NCBI GenBank assembly: GCA_025594325.1
Contig: JANHCV010000004.1
Span: 1,302,001 to 1,366,000 of the forward strand
Length of the DNA: 64,000 bases
Direction of reading: 5' to 3'
Source: Blastocladiella emersonii ATCC 22665
Taxonomy: Eukaryota > Fungi > Blastocladiomycota
In this document: positions 19,565 through 64,000 of the stretch, one piece after another
How the letters are laid out: every line of letters begins with the position of its first letter
How positions within the stretch are numbered: position 1 is the first letter of the stretch
Notes under the pieces: model-generated
What the model saw: the letters and a program-made list of their open reading frames with translations, nothing else
Database searches by the model: none
What the model was told of the DNA's origin: nothing
Translations under genes and position numbers: made by a program

Positions 19565-19726
19565 GACAGTGCGGGGGTTGGAGAGCCTTGTTGACGGCCG
19601 GCATCGCGGCCAGAGTTGTTTCAGGCCCGCCATGTTCGACACGCTGCGCCCGCACGACCTCGCTGCATGAGAGGCGGGCGGGAGCGCGGGGCGGGTCCTC
19701 GCTCTCGCACCACGCAACGAGTTTGA

Positions 19727-27988: not shown

Positions 27989-28162
27989 GGGCGGTTCGGG
28001 AGAGGAGGAGCAGTCTACGGCGCGACAGCACAAGAATGCACGGCCCGCATTCCGTACTCGCCCTCACAGGACCATCGCCCACTCGATCGGCCTCGCCGGG
28101 CTTGGCGTGGGGAAATTGAAGTGTATGAATGAGTTTCTTCGTCTTCATGTCCACAACGTAGA

Positions 28163-55807: not shown

Positions 55808-58021
55808 TCAAACCTTGGAGACCGCGAGCCGACGCAACTCAAGCTTGGGCTGCGCGGGGATCACGATGAACAGCGCGAGCGTGAACATGAGGAGGTTGAG
55901 CGACGCGTTCATGTCGCGGTCGACCTCGACGCGGCACCGCGGGCACGCTGAGCGGCGGCTGTCCGGCACGGGGCTCAGGTCGCACTCGCCGAGCGCCGCT
56001 GCGACCGGGTCGAGCGCGGCGCACACGGCGCACCACTTGGACGAGAGCGCCTCGCTCACCAAGTAAACGTGGGCACCCATGGACCGCAGCACGCGCGGGA
56101 TCTTCACGAGCAGCTCCGCCACCGACCCGCGGCCAAACTCGAACTCGCTGCCCAGCACCAGCACCGCGCGCCGGCACGCGTGCTTGAGCTGCCCGATCAG
56201 GTCCGGCGTCTTCGCCCCGTCCCGCCCCCGCCCCCGCCGCTCCCGCCGCAGCGCACGGTAGTGCTTGATCGACGACTGTACGAGCGCGTAATCGGCCGCC
56301 GGCTTGCGCTGCTGCACGAGAAACAGCAGCGTCCGCTGCAGCTCCTTGCGCGCCGCCTCGTCGCCCGGGTACGCGTCGCGCAGCGCTGCGAGGGCGAGAC
56401 GCACCGTCTCCTCGGCGCGATCGAGGCTCGCGGCGACGGCACGGTCGATCGCCGCGCGCGCGGCTTGCGCGCCGTCCGCGGCCGTGGCGCACGTGCTGAG
56501 CAGCGAAGCGAAGTCGATGGCGGCGGGGGAAGCGGACTCGGTGTTCAGCACGGGCGGGTCCGAGTTGAGGTCGTCGGTGGTCGCTGCGGACCCGTCGCCC
56601 GTCAAGACGTCGGGAGTGGCGTCATGGACGGGCGCAGCGGACCCGTCACCCGCCGAGATGTCAGCAGCAGCGCCGTGGATGGGCACAGCGGCGGACAGCG
56701 TGCGCTCGAGCTCGCGCACGATGAACTGGTCCTTGAACTCAGCCGAGGCCTCGGCGCCCAGCCGCTTGACGTGGGCGCGGGCCTTGCCGAAGACAATGTC
56801 GAAGCCGGCCTGCGCGCCCGCAAGCTTCTCAGCAAGCCCGTCAAGCGTCGCCACCAGCTCCTCGGCGCGCTCGGCGGCGGTGCGCAAGTCAAGAAGCGCG
56901 CTCGTGAGGAGAGACGTGAGCTTCCTGACCGTAAGCAGCCGGCCGGGCACGCTGCCGCGATACGCGAGCACGAGCCGCTGCAGCTTGACGATGAGCGACG
57001 CCGATACGATGCGGGCCGTGATCAGGAAGACCTGGCCCGGGTCGCCGATGATCGCGCTGAAGTTGGCGGGAAGCAGGATGTACCGCGTGTGCACGTCGCG
57101 CGAGCTCGGGTCCTGGAAGCCGCCGCTGAGCACGGGCCGCTCGACGATCGTGGCGAAGATGCCCCTGCCGCGGACAAACGAGTCGGGAAGGACGGGAAGC
57201 GCACCGCCGATTGCCGCGAGACGATCCGCGTAGCCGTCCGAGTCCATGGCACCAACCCAGTTGACAAGAGCGCCTGCGAGGCTCGCGTCGAGCGCGGTGG
57301 CGGCGTCCTGGCTGAGGGGCCGCATGCCCGATTTGACGAGGAGAGCGTGGATGCAGCGGCCGTTGGTGATGACGGTGCCGTAGAACTGGTTGCGGAGCTC
57401 GTGGCCAGTCCAGAACCACAGCAGCTTGGGCCGCATGATGCCTGCGAGGAGCGCGAAATCCGAGTCCCACTGCGCCTTGGCCACCTTGGCCCGCTCGAGG
57501 AGCTGAGCCGCGGCCGCGCAGTAGTCCTCGGGCCGCGCAACGCCCGCGTCGATCAACTGCAGAATCACCTCGTTGAGCGGCGGCGGCGACGAGCAGACGG
57601 GTTCGCTCTCACACGGAGCAGCGGAACCAGTGATCAGCTCGCGAAGGGCAGCGGGCGAGAAAGAAAAGAACTCGGGCTTGGGGAAGAACTCGGGGATCCA
57701 GACGGAGACGTAGAGACGGCGAGGGGTCCAACCCTCAGCCGTGATCCGCGTGGCAGCGTCGCAGAGCGCGTAAAGCACGACGGACCTCGGCTGGCCGTGT
57801 TCCGTTCGGGCAGACTCCATTCCTCTAGACTCGAGCGACGCGTCATTTTCCCGTGACGACGCGGCGGCAGGAGATCGGGAGCGTAACTTCGAAGTGGTAG
57901 TACCACCGCCCACTGGCGCAGCGGCGGCGGCGGACGCGAACACGGCAATGTCGGCTTGGCGGGGCGCGGATGATGTTGACCTGGATCGACTTGAAGCGCT
58001 GACGGCGTGAGGCGGGATCAC
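55808..58021 (-). CDS. Fanzor1 RNA-guided endonuclease, 'Fanzor B'
   Basis: 737-aa ORF: FYGTVITNG, AIIGDPGQ (D327), VLVLGSE, LVSEALSSKWCAVC (E657), CPRC, VDRDMNASLNL (D703). The true start codon is uncertain. Confidence 0.85.
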   Translation of the reverse strand: MIPPHAVSASSRSRSTSSAPRQADIAVFASAAAAAPVGGGTTTSKLRSRSPAAASSRENDASLESRGMESARTEHGQPRSVVLYALCDAATRITAEGWTPRRLYVSVWIPEFFPKPEFFSFSPAALRELITGSAAPCESEPVCSSPPPLNEVILQLIDAGVARPEDYCAAAAQLLERAKVAKAQWDSDFALLAGIMRPKLLWFWTGHELRNQFYGTVITNGRCIHALLVKSGMRPLSQDAATALDASLAGALVNWVGAMDSDGYADRLAAIGGALPVLPDSFVRGRGIFATIVERPVLSGGFQDPSSRDVHTRYILLPANFSAIIGDPGQVFLITARIVSASLIVKLQRLVLAYRGSVPGRLLTVRKLTSLLTSALLDLRTAAERAEELVATLDGLAEKLAGAQAGFDIVFGKARAHVKRLGAEASAEFKDQFIVRELERTLSAAVPIHGAAADISAGDGSAAPVHDATPDVLTGDGSAATTDDLNSDPPVLNTESASPAAIDFASLLSTCATAADGAQAARAAIDRAVAASLDRAEETVRLALAALRDAYPGDEAARKELQRTLLFLVQQRKPAADYALVQSSIKHYRALRRERRGRGRDGAKTPDLIGQLKHACRRAVLVLGSEFEFGRGSVAELLVKIPRVLRSMGAHVYLVSEALSSKWCAVCAALDPVAAALGECDLSPVPDSRRSACPRCRVEVDRDMNASLNLLMFTLALFIVIPAQPKLELRRLAVSKV

Positions 58022-58099
58022 GATGTTGCGTGCGCACGCGATGGCCGTCGGACATGACAGCAGCGGAAGCGATCGCGAGAGTGGTCAGTCGGACCGTCG

Positions 58100-60720
58100 C
58101 GTGAGTACCTGGTCGAAGCACACACGATGGGTTTCTAGGGCAGCGCGACGAGCGTGCAAGTTGTGAGTGATCGGCTGTGCTCACCGCGGTATGCGACCTA
58201 AAGTGACACGTCCCAGGTTGAGGGTGACCTGCGACCCTGGAGCCTTAGTCGAGCGACTTGGGCCCTTGCACTTGCGCACGGGCAGAGCCACGCAATTCTT
58301 ACTCCAACGGATGCTCGTGAGTGGGGGCGTCGGTCATGACGAAGCCGTAGTTGCGTACCGTCGTCCACGGAAGGCGAGCTTGCCCCTACACGAACAGCGA
58401 CGCTCATGTCAGTTCGTGCCGTGCAACGGGTCTTGGATGCACGCGTACCGGGACACCGGGATGGACCCGCTCGCTGCTATCACGCGATCCATGTTGAGCT
58501 CGACCTGCTTCTTGACTTACAGGTCACTCGGCCAGGGCGACGCGACGCGACGCGATGCGTGTGCGGCCGGAGCGATGTCGGCAAAGATGCGTCCCGCCCT
58601 CACGTGTGTAGCGAGCCTGATGTCGGGACCGGCGCGAGGTTGTCGGGTGCGGTTGCCGGTCGTTGCGGGCCCGACTGACCGGCCATGAGGGAGAACTCCT
58701 CGATGCCGCCGCCGTCTGGACGGACACGCGTAGCGTCAGTAGACATCTCGGCGCGTGCACCTTGTGTACCGGAGGTACAGCAGCCGAGCACGAGTGTAGC
58801 GCGACGCTCGAGATGCAGGCGTTGAGCGCCGACCGGTCGGCATACACATGCTGACGCGCAAGTCAGTTCTGGTTCCGATCGGCGGCCGTGGCCGTGCGCG
58901 TACCGAGCTTGAGCCCCTGCTGGGGCGTAGCCCTGAAGGGCGTAGCGACGCCGTGTCACTCGTCGTGCGACGTGTCGTCGCGCTATGCGGGACGCCAGGA
59001 CGCGTCCGGTCACGATGCGTCGATGAACAGCCCACGCGTATTGGCCCGCCTACGCACGGGTACGGGTTGCGTGCACGTCGAGCGAGTTTGCGTGGTGTTG
59101 CAGAAGCGCGAGGTGGAAGGCGGGGAGTCGATAGCGTCAAGGAGACAACCGGTTCGAAGAAGGAGCGTTGCCCGTAACGCGTAAGCGCGACGCGTTCTGG
59201 AGACAAGCGTGACTGGCGCGCGCGCGCACGTCAAGGCGTCGCGTCTCCCGCGGCCGCGAGACAATGCGTGACTTTCATGTGGCACTGTGACGCGGCAACT
59301 TTCGCCCCGCACAGTTTTACCATGAATGCAAGGGCTTCCAACAAGTCGTGGTACTAGAGGCACTCGCACCATTTCGAACCAGAGGTCGCCCCGATCGCCT
59401 GCCGCCTCGGCACGCTCGGGAAGCTGTTTGCCGGTTTCGGTAGCCAGCGAGCATGAGAACTCCACCTTGGGCCCAGCTAGACGTCGTCCATGATACGCTG
59501 AGCCAGTCACGCGAGGAGATCCGCCTGCCGTCGCGTCGCCGCCCTGCGCCCGATCGCCACTGCTCTGCACTCAAACCTCAGAGCTGCTCACATCCACAAC
59601 TCATCCACTCCATGGCGCCCACAACCGACCGGGTCCCACGACCCGATCGACTTCGCGGCTCCCCGTCCGCCTCGGTCTGTCGCGGGCCACTTGCCACCGC
59701 GGCGCCAGTGGCTCCGACAGCGGCATTCTTACATGTTGCTCCATGAGTTCGAGAAGAAGAGCGTGGAATGAAGAGCGCTGCAACTGCTTCCCCCAAGGAC
59801 GCGTTCCGATGCAACGCGCACGCCGTTGCCCCTTGCGCGCGCCGCATGTGAACGCCGCGAACACGGACCGCGTTGGCTCACGCGATCGTCGCGCTTCTCC
59901 CTTGCAACACGCTCGTCAAGCATGTCCAGGCGTCGCTCCGCTGTTGCCCTGGCAGCTGCTCTCGCGGTGAGGCGTCGACGTGCCCGAGGCCGCCCATGAA
60001 CGCCACGTCGGGCCAGCCGTCGTCGTCTCGCCCCTCACACCGCTCCGAAGCAAACGCATCGAATGGAACCCAACCGCAACTTGCTGCATTTTGTCGTCCA
60101 GATGTTCATGACTCTGTGGTTGGCACAGCCGGGCGGGATCCGGTGTTGGCCGTGCAGCGCCTGAGCGCGCATGCCGCACTCAGCAGGTTGGTCGGGTGGG
60201 CGTTCCCACGCTCAGCGATCGGGCACAACGGCATCTAGGTGTACGAGACCAAGGCGGTCGTAGACGGGCTGCACGGCGACTACCATCGCGTCAAGGAGTT
60301 GCTGTACGAGCTTGAGAAGCGCCCGTTGACAAGCTGCGCGATGCAACGATAGTCGCCGTCGCGATCTTGTTCCTTAGTTTTTGGATCGCGCTCGGCGGTG
60401 CGGCCTCTCTACGGCGCTGTTCTACCGCCTGCGCGCCACGTTCATCGCCTCGGCACAACGCTGCGGACTTTCACGGGCAACACAGGCATCATCGGCGGCA
60501 GCGTCGGCCTCGGCAAGAGCGCCGCCGCCACCACGGCCGACCTCATGAAGAAGGCCGACTCGTTTGTCGTCGGCCGCGCGAGAGCTTGCCGCCGCTCGTC
60601 TCGGGCCGCGTCCAGGCGCCGCCCCGCGTGTTTGAGTGTAGTTCGAGCGCGCGCCAACCGCGCTGCATCGCCGCCCATCATGTATCATTACCCATCCCGA
60701 TGATCGTTAGATTGACCAAA
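58100..60720. pseudogene. Decayed coding remnants (possible FAR1/WRKY-like finger on the minus strand; P-loop fragment on the plus strand)
   Basis: Broken frames give RRCSCRGKL...FVMTDAPTHEHPLE at about 58280-58410 (-) and TGIIGGSVGLGKS at about 60480-60520 (+). Confidence 0.25.
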
Positions 60721-61045
60721 TTCATTCCGTACGTTTCTGACCTGCCCTTTCCCATGTCGAGCGTGGTGCGCGCGGTGCGAACGTCCTTGAAACGCGACGC
60801 GATGTGGCTCTGCTCGGCCAGCCGCCGCGCCACCTCGGGCTGACTCCCCTCGGACCACTCACCGCCTTGCTCATCTTGCTGTTCATAAGGGCGACTGACT
60901 GGAACGGCGAGGATCGAAGAAGCTGAGAGCTCACTGAGCAGCTACGCTATAAAACTCGGCCGAGCCCCCACTTCCCTCCAGCTCTTGTTCCTCAACCCTT
61001 CAACAGGACCCTCTCATCGCAGACTCTGTTCCCTATACGACCATC

Positions 61046-62032
61046 ATGTCTGCCTCGATCGCTCTTGCCGCCCCCGTCTCGCCGTCGTCCAAGTCGCCCG
61101 TGTCCTCGGTCAAGCACTCGCTCCGCGTCGTGGTCGCTCCCGCGAACGGCACCAGTAGCTGCAACGTGCCCGGGAACAAGGTTGCCGACAACGAGTGCGC
61201 CGTCGACTCGACGCCGACCCCTACGGTCGGCACCCTCAAGGACCGCTTCGAGCAGCTCGCGTCTGCTCCAAGCTCGCCCGCCGGCACCAGCCCGCGCTCG
61301 GCCTGCTCGCGGTCCTCGGACCAGGTCCACGTCGTCAAGTTCATCGGCGACAACGGCCACTTCGTGCAGGGCGACGACACCATCAAGTCCAAGTCGGCTC
61401 CGGCGGGTCCCGCGACGGCGGCGGCGGTCGTGCTCGGGACGCTCGCGGGGGTTCATGTGGCTACCCTGCGTGCTTCCTTTGAGCCCACGACCGTCGCTGT
61501 GGCTGCTGTCGCTCCCGTCACCCCGGCTACCGACGTCCCGGCTGCCGTCGACACCCTCGCGTCGACTGCGGCGCCCATCAAGGAGATCGTCTCGTGCCCC
61601 GTCCCCGTCGCTGCTGCCCCTACCGCCGAGAAGAAGCGTAGCGCCGCTGGCAAAGTGCTGCGCTGGGTCCGCCGCCGTGCTGGCCACCGTGGCAGTGCGT
61701 CTCCGGCCGCGGTGGACCCCGAGGTCAAGGTGGTGGTGGCGGCGGAGGCCGTCGAGGCCAACGTCGCGAACGTCGTCGGCTCGAACCTGGCCGTCCTGTC
61801 GGCCGCGCTCGGGTCCGATCAGACGCTGGTTGACAACCACGAGTCGACCTCCCGCTGGTCGTCCTTCAAGGCCCGGATCGGCAGCCTCCTGGGCGGTGCA
61901 TCCAGTACCGTCAAGGCGTCCGCCGTCTCGTCCGAGTCCAAGCCGCACCCGATCAAGCGTGGCGGCGTCAAGGTTCTACCAACCACCCCGTCGCCTGTCG
62001 TGGTCCTGCGGTCCGCTGCCCTTGTTTCTTGA
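61046..62032 (+). CDS. Hypothetical Ala/Val/Ser/Pro-rich protein
   Basis: 328-aa ATG-started ORF with host codon bias and a TATA-like element upstream at about 60948; no recognised domain. Confidence 0.6.
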   Translation: MSASIALAAPVSPSSKSPVSSVKHSLRVVVAPANGTSSCNVPGNKVADNECAVDSTPTPTVGTLKDRFEQLASAPSSPAGTSPRSACSRSSDQVHVVKFIGDNGHFVQGDDTIKSKSAPAGPATAAAVVLGTLAGVHVATLRASFEPTTVAVAAVAPVTPATDVPAAVDTLASTAAPIKEIVSCPVPVAAAPTAEKKRSAAGKVLRWVRRRAGHRGSASPAAVDPEVKVVVAAEAVEANVANVVGSNLAVLSAALGSDQTLVDNHESTSRWSSFKARIGSLLGGASSTVKASAVSSESKPHPIKRGGVKVLPTTPSPVVVLRSAALVS

Positions 62033-62719
62033 GTCTTCTCTTTTGTGTTTCAGTTCGTGATACCTATCATCTAAACCGAAATCTCTGCTGTTTGCCTGCT
62101 TCGCGTGTAATTTGATCTCGGCTTGTTCTCATTCATTCTCGATGGTCTTTCGACTTTGACTTGGTGATGCGGTCCATGAATCGAATGTGAGTAACATGTA
62201 CCGGTGAGCTTTGATCATGTCATTACTGCAGCATGCTGTCGAGCCGGTGACCATGTGAAAAGCGTCGCGTTGTTCACGTCGCGGCTGCGCCACCCAGGGC
62301 TAAGCCACCACCACCGACACTCGGTCGCCCGCCGCCGCTTTCTGCTTCCACGGCTTCCCTTCCGTTTGCATCTCGTCTTCTCAGGTCGCCGTTGACAACG
62401 GGCTGTGCACCGGATTCAGGGAGGATCCGCAGCGGACGCTGACCGCACCTGCAGCTTTCCGCCGGAACGGAACTACGGCGCGCTGCGGCGCCGCCCCCGC
62501 GTCGTTGGACCACGCGCCGTGGAAGTCACCGCCATGCCTAGGATCCAGCGTGGGACTCTTCTCCCATGAAGACTCAACGACTATTGACTCAATGGCTCAG
62601 ACGTGGCGCTGATGATACGACGGCACAAGCAGAATGCACATCCTATAACTATGAGCAAACACCGCGTGTGATCGAGAGCTCACGAAGCAGGACGAGCGGA
62701 GGGCAGCGAGCGCGCGTGC

Positions 62720-63255
62720 TTCTCCATTCACCCGCGCCCTGAGCCCCCAAGGGGACCGAGCCAGAAGCGCAAGGGAGAAGACACGCGACGGCACACACGT
62801 TTCGTCTCCATTCACCCGCGTCCCGAGCCTCCATGGAGACCGAGCCGGACGACGCGGGGGAGAGTCCTCTGCGGCGGCCACGGCTTGACGGCGGCCTCGC
62901 GTCACGATCGCACTTTCGTCTCCATTTACCCGCGTCCCGAGCCTCCATGGAGACCTAGCCGGGCGACGCGGGGGAGAGTACTCGGGGGCCTCGCACACGT
63001 CCCGGGCCACTCCGTTCACCCGCGCCTCGAGCCCCCATGGGGGCCTAGCCGAGAACGCGGGGGAGAGCCCGTTTGCGACCACCTCTCGCGCGCGTTCGTC
63101 TCCATTTACCCACGTCCCGAGCCCCCAAGGGGACCGAGCCGGTGACGCAGGGGAGAGTACTAGGCGGCAGAGTTAGCGCCTCGTGTGCGCTTTCGTCTCC
63201 ATATACCCGCGCCCCGAACCCCCATGGGGGTCTAGCCGGGAGCGCGGGGGAGAGT
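62720..63255. repeat. Array of six structured ~60-65-nt repeats separated by 21-48-nt variable spacers
   Basis: Copies at about 62720, 62800, 62914, 63009, 63095 and 63191. Consensus: TTCGTCTCCATTYACCCGCGYCCCGAGCCYCCAWGGRGACCKAGCCGG..GACGCGGGGGAGAGT. Confidence 0.9.
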
Positions 63256-63299
63256 ACTCGGCGGCGGAATCGCGCGGGAGGAACGACCGACTGCTCGTG

Positions 63300-64000
63300 G
63301 TGCTGCCACTCTTCTTGATCTGCGACGCGGTACCGCGCACGACTGCTGCGACACGATCGAGTCGCGCCGGACAGTTGAGGCCGGGCGGAGGACCGAGTTC
63401 TTGACGATGATGGTCTTGAGGTCTCAGCAGTCGCGGACACGTCGAGGCTGATGATGAAACACGACGCGCGACAGCGACCGCGACCGCGGCGGATCGAGTT
63501 GAACGAGCGTGCGCCTTGGCCAGGCCTTGCCGCCGAGCTTGGTCACGGTGCCCAGTACTTGGTGTCGAGGTAGTTGTGGTGGTCGGACGTCGATACACTA
63601 CACGGCGAGGGTTATGAGTTAGAGATCAGAGAGACCGGTTTGGGTGCGCATCATGATCATACCTGTCGCGATGCACCACCAAGAACCGAGACTGGAGCTT
63701 GGGCAGGGCAACGAGACTCTCAGCCAGCTCGACGTGAACTCGATGCCGAGCACGCCTTGGCCGTGATCCAGATCATGTCGACGGGTCAAGAGGGGGCGGG
63801 CGGAACTTGAGCACCGTCGTGGCCGTCATGTTGCGACGGGTGCAGCAGGTCCTTGAGGCGTCGCCGAGCCGTGGTCGTTGATGATCATGTGGCCGACTCG
63901 GACGAGGAGGAGGGAGGCCGATCGAGTTGATATCATGGTGGACGGTGAAGACTTGATGAGGCCGAGAGGCAGCAGGAGCGACGGGAGCTCGAGTATTTGT
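63300..64000 (-). pseudogene. Degraded intron-containing gene running out of the window
   Basis: Intron-like GTATGA...CTAAC...TAG at about 63660-63600, with flanking short high-GC3 peptides in shifting frames. Confidence 0.3.

Follow-up and report, generated by a model that had tools for sequence, protein, structure and literature searches.

Six head-to-tail copies of a bulged hairpin lie in a non-coding stretch of contig JANHCV010000004.1, assembly GCA_025594325.1, of Blastocladiella emersonii, a water mould-like fungus, within the 64,000-nucleotide stretch of DNA analyzed here (the window). The reading favored here, with somewhat better than even confidence, is that selection has acted on an RNA from the minus strand and that the locus would be an array of six structured RNA modules that is lineage-specific and present in low copy number. 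The hairpin itself is probably an undescribed structured RNA. The RNA reading is the best one because each unit keeps its own pairing over considerable divergence, G·U pairs are found on one strand only, changes in the stems are nearly all transitions, and the linkers between the hairpins drift. An initial annotation, made from the letters of this DNA, had listed a polycistronic structured RNA, a guide-RNA array, and single-stranded DNA hairpins of a mobile element among the possibilities; a polycistronic or modular structured RNA is supported as the leading idea.

The non-coding RNA biology of early-diverging fungi is almost unexplored. Here, sequence alone gives a clean sign, resolved by strand, that RNA pairing is under selection in an element outside the curated RNA families, and the tempting reading of the locus as a "eukaryotic CRISPR" or Fanzor array is removed as unsupported.

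Position and units of the array

The units span positions 62716 to 63266, and their starts are spaced by 84, 114, 90, 90, and 97 nt. Six repeats, as first described, were recovered by TRF (period of 90/97), by a repeat finder (copies 62 to 92% identical to the reference copy), and by a search of the window with a 24-nt pattern, which gave 6 matches against 0 expected. The G+C content of the window ranges from 61 to 71%. Two other views of the contig were searched together with the window, making ~93 kb in all: L002, whose coordinates equal those of the window minus 51045 and which extends the view to ~72 kb, and L001, which lies upstream. Neither the pattern search nor a covariance model (R1), a check proposed at the outset, found further copies of the hairpin in the window, L001, or L002. 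Unit 1, the most diverged, is not among the cmsearch matches listed for R1 at default filters. Two weak R1 matches, at 28058-28131 and 19629-19698, fold differently and were rejected. The coordinates of the features are given in Table 1.

TABLE 1 Features of the hairpin array and its surroundings (window coordinates)
Feature	Position	Strand	Basis and description
Whole array, six units and terminal linkers	62702..63278	-	TRF and repeat finder; limits are where the match to a differently flanked second copy in the genome begins and ends
Hairpin unit 6, first in minus sense	63196..63253	-	MFE -37.8 kcal/mol, z -3.06; R1 101.5 bits; P1 5 bp, 5-nt 3' bulge, P2 7-8 bp, 1-nt bulge, P3 3-4 bp, 4-nt 5' bulge GCUA, P4 6 bp, loop CAUG
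Hairpin unit 5	63099..63156	-	R1 98.8 bits; loop CUUG
Hairpin unit 4	63009..63066	-	Folding and pair table; P3 with compensatory U-A
Hairpin unit 3	62919..62977	-	92% identical to unit 2; apex pair U-A; R1 98.2 bits
Hairpin unit 2	62805..62863	-	Apex pair U-A; 2-nt bulge GU; R1 94.3 bits
Hairpin unit 1, last in minus sense, most diverged	62721..62779	-	Folding and pair table
Five linkers (span 62780..63195)	62780-62804, 62863-62918, 62977-63008, 63066-63098, 63156-63195	-	Ends conserved, centers fast-evolving, variable length
A+T-richer patch	62600..62660	-	60-120 nt downstream of the array in minus sense; TAG...TATAGGATGT-like elements; read from the sequence

Hairpin architecture, covariation, and strand

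Every unit forms a bulged hairpin of 58 to 59 nt with 22 bp and three bulges at fixed positions. The minus-strand fold common to the six units consists of P1 (5 bp) with a 5-nt 3' bulge above it, P2 (8 bp), a bulge of 1 to 2 nt, P3 (3 bp), a 4-nt 5' bulge (GCUC or GCUA), P4 (6 bp), and a CAUG or CUUG loop. The single long hairpin described initially therefore stands, with an apical helix of 6 bp in place of the 4 bp then given. When both strands were folded, the minus strand was the more stable in all six units, by 2.2 to 7.9 kcal/mol.

Pairing was scored on a MAFFT alignment of the minus-strand units that was built without structural input. Standard pairs fill 131 of the 132 pair cells (99.2%), and the sole unpaired cell is the outer P1 pair of unit 4 (U·U), where the flanks form the Watson-Crick pairing GGGC/GCCC instead. 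Double-sided, compensatory changes were observed in 5 pairs (7 cells). The P3 pairs 33/58 and 34/57 change from C-G to U-A in one unit each, the apex pair 44/51 changes from C-G to U-A in units 2 and 3, and pair 29/60 is U-A, C-G, or U-G across the units. Every compensatory change listed in the initial annotation is present in the pair table, and the signal is stronger than first described. Not one of 500 shuffles matched the observed paired percentage or covariation score, in a control that ignores kinship among the units, and sliding the 3' partners by 1 to 3 columns lowered pairing to 31 to 61%. The covariation rests on six sequences, two of which are close duplicates, and on ~17 to 20 substitution events.

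The two strands differ in the pairs that they can form. The minus strand has 113 Watson-Crick pairs, 18 G·U pairs, and 1 mismatch, whereas the plus strand has 113 Watson-Crick pairs and 19 mismatches; the 18 standard cells that are not Watson-Crick all hold G·U on the minus strand, which corresponds to A·C on the plus strand. P2 of unit 5, for example, holds a U-G and a G-U pair whose plus-strand equivalents are A·C mismatches, and one G·U pair is fixed in all six units. Unit 1 has three U-G pairs in P2 and a compensatory U-A in P3. The stem columns polymorphic for A/G are all compensated (5/5), and the uncompensated transition columns are all C/T on the minus strand (5/5). The structured strand is the minus strand, and, judged from the substitution pattern, pairing appears to have been preserved by evolution on that strand only.

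Substitutions are distributed very differently over the array. Transitions and transversions number 98:5 in the stems, 20:27 in the loops, and 40:124 in the flanking linker columns, while the mean pairwise difference is 0.16 in the stems, 0.21 in loops and bulges, and 0.45 in the flanking linker columns, a linker divergence ~3 times that of the stems. With RNA parameters, the identical architecture was predicted in all six units, at MFE frequencies of 0.20 to 0.32. With DNA parameters, the apical registers shift, ensemble frequencies are low, and the apical helix is not consistently predicted, a difference between the models that would mildly favor RNA over single-stranded DNA.

Variants of the array and the minisatellite alternative

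Evidence on other copies of the array comes from Logan contigs of four DNA runs from one sample. Among the 5 differences listed between a near-identical variant contig and the window, 63021 C>T and 63059 G>A fall on the two sides of a single P2 pair in unit 4 and constitute an additional compensatory event. Joints that leave out 113 nt (one unit) or 277 nt (three units) were also seen, with back-joints of 232 and 438 nt; these are versions of the array with other unit numbers. The summed contig depth over the array is ~1 to 3.5 times that of the stretch 63287-63474, which is a rough guide to copy number only and gives no sign of a high-copy family.

In form, the array is a minisatellite, with head-to-tail units in the 10- to 100-nt class and variation in unit number, a description of form and not of function. 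It is possible to go further and regard it as a neutral minisatellite with a quasi-palindromic unit, in which pairing is kept at the DNA level by intra-strand template switching or quasi-palindrome correction, together with gene conversion between units, and the hairpin is functionless. Template switching can make and maintain perfect hairpins and apparent compensatory changes (PMC8794818), the head-to-tail arrangement and the unit-number variants would be expected of such a repeat, and very G+C-rich genomes give many stable hairpins, the single-unit folding z-scores here being only -0.8 to -3.1. However, template-switch correction is Watson-Crick and strand-symmetric, so that it leaves unexplained the 18 G·U against 0 A·C cells on one strand, the G·U pair shared by all units, and the restriction of the 98:5 transition bias to the stems. 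Gene conversion does not keep the units alike, since their stems differ by 16% and their linkers by 45%, and yet pairing in these unhomogenized units stands at 99%. A neutral minisatellite is therefore considered unlikely.

Linkers between the hairpins

Delimited at the outer pair of the hairpin, the linkers are 25, 56, 32, 33, and 40 nt long, in place of the spacers of ~21, 48, 29, 27, and 32 nt first reported. In the alignment, read in the minus sense, most linkers open with CGAAAG, CGAAAC, or CGAACG and close with (C)GAGUAC or a variant of it. Their centers differ in both length and sequence, although some pairs align above shuffles (z-scores of 2.8 and 4.2). The earlier caveat that the spacers might be diverged homologs is borne out by these common ends and by the weak end-to-end similarity. 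The proposed search for spacer targets covered ~93 kb (the rest of the window, L001, and the tail of L002) and its longest match was 14 nt, a length expected by chance. The linkers are not unique acquired spacers, because their ends are homologous, their lengths are variable, and their outside matches are at chance level; the alignment indicates that they are the fast-evolving part of a repeat unit of ~90 nt. The conserved flank motifs are missing from units 1 and 4, where additional Watson-Crick pairs extend P1 in their place, which suggests that the flanks of the other units may also interact.

Coding potential

The initial annotation had argued from a broken reading frame that selection acts on structure rather than on protein. 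The argument from the frame is weaker than stated, since all but one of the five periods are divisible by 3 and ORFs of ~160 amino acids are open across units 1 to 5 on both strands. The conclusion itself holds on other grounds. The difference in G+C content among codon phases is 0.05 to 0.07 in the array and 0.3 to 0.5 in the neighboring genes, whose GC3 is 0.85 to 0.99, and neither homologs among 5.8 billion proteins nor gene-product records were found for the two long array ORFs. The array is non-coding because it has neither a codon-phase G+C signal nor protein homologs.

Translation of the repeats as an exon for a tandem peptide rich in proline and arginine, the outcome named at the start as a refutation and checked here directly, would account for the periods divisible by 3 and for the open frames. 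At 65 to 70% G+C, though, open frames arise by chance alone. Moreover, a 1-nt indel shifts the units into different frames upstream of it, and the peptide is poorly conserved, varying where pairing holds. Together with the flat codon-phase profile beside genes of high GC3 and the complete lack of homologs and recorded products in the searches above, this makes a translated exon highly improbable. The 99.2% pairing is in keeping with selection on structure.

Genomic context and mobile elements

The array lies within a 3.6-kb gap between convergent genes, in the sense orientation 2.4 kb downstream of a minus-strand phosphodiesterase gene. Its neighbors are a 328-amino-acid ORF without a Pfam domain, unannotated DNA, and the phosphodiesterase gene. 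No gene is annotated at the array locus in the B. emersonii assembly, and no promoter or terminator was identified for the array. The A+T-richer patch (Table 1) may, from its composition and motifs, be a region of 3'-end formation for the putative minus-strand transcript. On the minus strand at 63590-63666, an intron-like element of ~76 nt (GTATGA...CTCTAAC...TAG) without coding periodicity was noted, at a level expected by chance in 1.4 kb; it could mark a non-coding host transcript or be due to chance.

One contig matches the array from 62702 and another matches it up to 63278, and outside these limits both continue in unrelated sequence; therefore, at least one copy of the array is located between other flanks. 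To the left, the segment 62300-62525 is multi-copy, with a summed depth 3 to 4 times that of 63287-63474, and several contigs diverge at 62461 and at 62519-62522. The array thus lies outside a repeated element whose end is ~175 nt away. The segment 62300-62525 looks like a terminus shared by copies of this element and includes small G+C-rich palindromes at 62468-62490 and 62509-62521. Next to 62595, a loxP-like linker sequence was observed in one contig of run X4 together with many single-T insertions, which look like a library or platform artifact of that run. To the right, a second version of the flank was observed at 63492-63700 with ~85% identity (32 differences in 209 nt), and in one contig 63278 is followed immediately by 63492, with the 213 nt between them missing. 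The array and part of its right flank seem to be duplicated elsewhere or to exist as a very divergent variant.

These limits bear on the proposal that the repeats are single-stranded DNA hairpins of a mobile element, namely, a rolling-circle transposon (a non-autonomous Helitron2/Helentron element) of which the array would be the satellite-like tandem core or a series of termination hairpins. Strand-specific pairing would then be maintained through the reading of the hairpin by a Rep protein on the transposed strand, and single-stranded DNA also tolerates G·T wobble, so that strand asymmetry alone is no proof of RNA. The further copy between different flanks, with sharp limits at ~62702 and ~63278, the end of a multi-copy element ~175 nt away at ~62525, and the short array of six monomers, comparable with HINE cores of at most ~5 to 6 monomers (PMC7492417), would all fit. 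In the HINE layout, a 5' subTIR, an inverted repeat, and a microsatellite lie to the left and a 3' subTIR and a palindrome to the right (PMC7492417). At the array, by contrast, no subterminal inverted repeats, direct repeats, or target-site duplication were found between the flanks over the ~270 to 300 nt searched, and the microsatellite and terminal palindrome of that layout are absent. A comparison of 62450-62720 with 63256-63560 gave 0 inverted matches of 10 to 12 nt, no more than shuffles. Nor is there a canonical Helitron 3' end, in which a hairpin stands 10 to 12 nt before CTRR: on the structured strand the hairpin is followed by CGAAAG... and not by CTRR. All internal units keep their pairing, although termination should need the terminal hairpin only, and DNA parameters do not stably predict the apical helix, two of whose lower three pairs would be G·T. 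The summed depth, rough guide as it is, is also not that of a high-copy transposable element. The mobile-element reading is thus disfavored and given only a small probability.

Fanzor genes and the guide-array interpretation

Two ORFs of the window have a Cas12f1-like TNB domain and are Fanzors. The array is 4.7 kb from one of them, as had been stated: Fanzor B, an ORF at 55808-58021 on the minus strand (annotated as H9P43_004223 in B. emersonii ATCC 22665). The 3' end of this ORF is at 55808, and the array lies on its 5' side, separated from it by a plus-strand gene. An omegaRNA occurs singly, overlaps both the end of the transposon and the 3' end of the nuclease ORF, and has its one guide at its own 3' end. 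The array is neither at nor overlapping the 3' end of a Fanzor ORF on the same strand, nor at the transposon end, and its hairpin does not recur as a scaffold with other nuclease copies: R1 matches nothing but the array in the window with its two Fanzors, L001, and L002.

A 4.8-kb segment that includes the N-terminal part of Fanzor B occurs twice on the contig, at 57779-62580 of the window (6734-11535 of L002) and at 6733-11542 of L001, 224 kb apart and with 97.8% identity. In addition to the Fanzor part, it contains a finger-like remnant, a P-loop fragment, and the 328-amino-acid ORF, which is identical in both copies. Together with Fanzor B, the segment probably forms a transposon of ~7 kb with its far end near 62525. 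It ends ~140 nt before the array, and the copy 224 kb upstream has no array; an unrelated Gln/Ser-rich gene is found where the array would be. That gene, at 11667-12212 of L001, is annotated with 162 amino acids, consists of (Q-S)n-rich tandem repeats of 45 to 51 nt unrelated to those of the array, and has an in-frame TAG in the genomic sequence at ~12019.

The initial annotation had called the array CRISPR-like and had named, among other readings, a guide-RNA array for a Fanzor or another protein, in which conserved scaffold hairpins would alternate with variable targeting segments. Conserved structured repeats do alternate with variable linkers, and the window does hold two Fanzor genes with TNB domains. 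Against this, the linkers have homologous ends and variable lengths, with matches of at most 14 nt in the window, L001, and L002; the hairpin stands beside no Fanzor; the array is on the 5' side of Fanzor B, beyond another gene; and the duplicated Fanzor-B segment lacks it. CRISPR arrays have near-identical direct repeats of ~23 to 55 nt and unique, unrelated spacers of near-uniform length. Here, the repeated core is 58 to 59 nt long with 62 to 92% identity and stems diverged by 16%, and the intervening sequences range from 25 to 56 nt and have both ends in common. No cas genes, effector, or leader were found adjoining the array, in agreement with the earlier remark that cas genes are lacking. 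A search for Fanzor paralogs returned two proteins, which are too few for a wider test of association. A guide-RNA array for a Fanzor or another protein is very hard to reconcile with these data, and neither a CRISPR-like array nor a Fanzor guide array is supported by the sequence comparisons.

Searches for known RNA classes

Rfam searches over the part of the window from 60 to 64 kb at E ≤ 10 returned nothing overlapping the array, and Rfam models at gathering score had no match in L001 or L002. ARAGORN recognized no tRNA-like unit, and inspection by eye found no K-turn, H/ACA pocket, C/D boxes, or Pol III A/B boxes or T-run. Two degenerate patterns used to look for relatives gave 0 matches in metagenome contigs, prokaryotic genomes, and viral contigs. 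A hammerhead ribozyme was considered, as the flanks CCGAGUAC ... CGAAA resemble CUGANGA ... GAAA; it was rejected, with U4 and G8, two essential positions of the core, lacking and no Rfam hammerhead match. On the plus strand, five TGATGA-type motifs occur within the 1.4 kb of 62% G+C surrounding the array (at 62610-62620, 63405-63460, 63870, and 63955). No D boxes matching them were found, and an Rfam C/D match at 63917-63985 is at chance level (13.8 bits).

As in miRNA-like or RNase III-processed hairpins, the stem spans about two helical turns and is maintained by compensatory change, with 22 pairs, 99.2% pairing, and 5 pairs changed on both sides.

Possible function and mechanism

The six 22-bp stems are natural substrates of RNase III-family enzymes. 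Transcription of one minus-sense precursor may run from the unannotated 2.4 kb that follow the convergent phosphodiesterase gene towards ~62.6 kb, and each hairpin would be recognized separately by a double-strand-specific or hairpin-specific protein. The preferred mechanism, given somewhat more than a third of the total probability, is that an RNase III-family enzyme cleaves the stems. Cleavage could release unit-length or ~22-nt small RNAs, as in polycistronic miRNA or snoRNA clusters, or it could cut read-through between the convergent genes and so act as a fail-safe terminator. As a second option, with about a quarter of the probability, the array may serve as a multivalent protein-binding platform in the manner of lncRNA repeat modules. 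More broadly, it is plausible, although somewhat short of an even chance, that the array represents an undescribed Blastocladiomycota-specific family of tandem structured small RNAs or modular lncRNA, with its own recognition protein or RNase III-type processing and few dispersed arrays. Several points weigh against the RNA reading. No Rfam match assigns an RNA class, the conserved asymmetric bulges of 4 and 5 nt are unusual for Dicer-type substrates, the distance of 2.4 kb from the nearest minus-strand stop codon upstream is large for a terminator, and variation in unit number is ordinary minisatellite behavior. Explanations outside those named in this study are judged very unlikely.

Comparison with known systems

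HINEs are Helentron non-autonomous elements carrying satellite-like arrays; these, like the array described here, are dispersed and short, with no more than ~six monomers and definite outer boundaries (PMC7492417). HINE monomers measure 140 to 180 bp and are flanked by a subTIR, an inverted repeat, a microsatellite, and a 3' palindrome (PMC7492417), none of which was found at the array; structural covariation among monomers is a feature of the array and not of HINEs. The Xist A-repeat is reported to have 7.5 to 8.5 G+C-rich hairpin cores separated by variable linkers (PMC4672913). Both systems consist of few tandem structured cores with linkers of variable length and would share the logic of a multivalent platform. 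The Xist core sequence is near-identical between copies, whereas in the array the mid-stem drifts and the pairing, helix base, and bulge positions are kept; the organism and context of Xist are unrelated to those of the array.

CRISPR arrays resemble the array in that a partly palindromic repeat alternates with variable intervening sequence. Unlike theirs, the repeats of the array are about twice as long and 16% diverged, with homologous ends to the intervening parts of 25 to 56 nt, and the array lacks cas genes, a leader, and protospacer matches (~93 kb searched) and resides in a eukaryotic genome. Fanzor/TnpB omegaRNAs likewise are structured non-coding RNAs, as the array is predicted to be, in a genome with Fanzor genes. 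In contrast to them, the array is six-fold, is 4.7 kb off on the 5' side, and is absent at the other Fanzor loci seen.

RNase III (Rnt1/Pac1) stem-loops with AGNN loops act as fail-safe terminators downstream of yeast genes. Like them, the array has sense-strand stem-loops downstream of a gene in a convergent intergenic region, and, by analogy, selection on double-stranded character may be a further likeness. Its loops are CAUG or CUUG rather than AGNN, it has six copies, and it lies 2.4 kb from the stop codon.

Tandem clusters of paralogous pre-miRNA hairpins, such as mir-430 and mir-17~92, and the polycistronic snoRNA clusters of fungi and plants, which are cut by RNase III, are also comparable. 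The array differs from these polycistronic clusters in its large conserved asymmetric bulges (4 and 5 nt) and in having no C/D or H/ACA boxes, pseudouridylation pocket, or Rfam match. It shares with the polycistronic clusters the head-to-tail hairpins of ~60 nt with stems of ~22 bp, the nearly invariant, seed-like 5' half of the 5' arm, and compensatory and G·U changes that keep the pairing while the linkers evolve fast.
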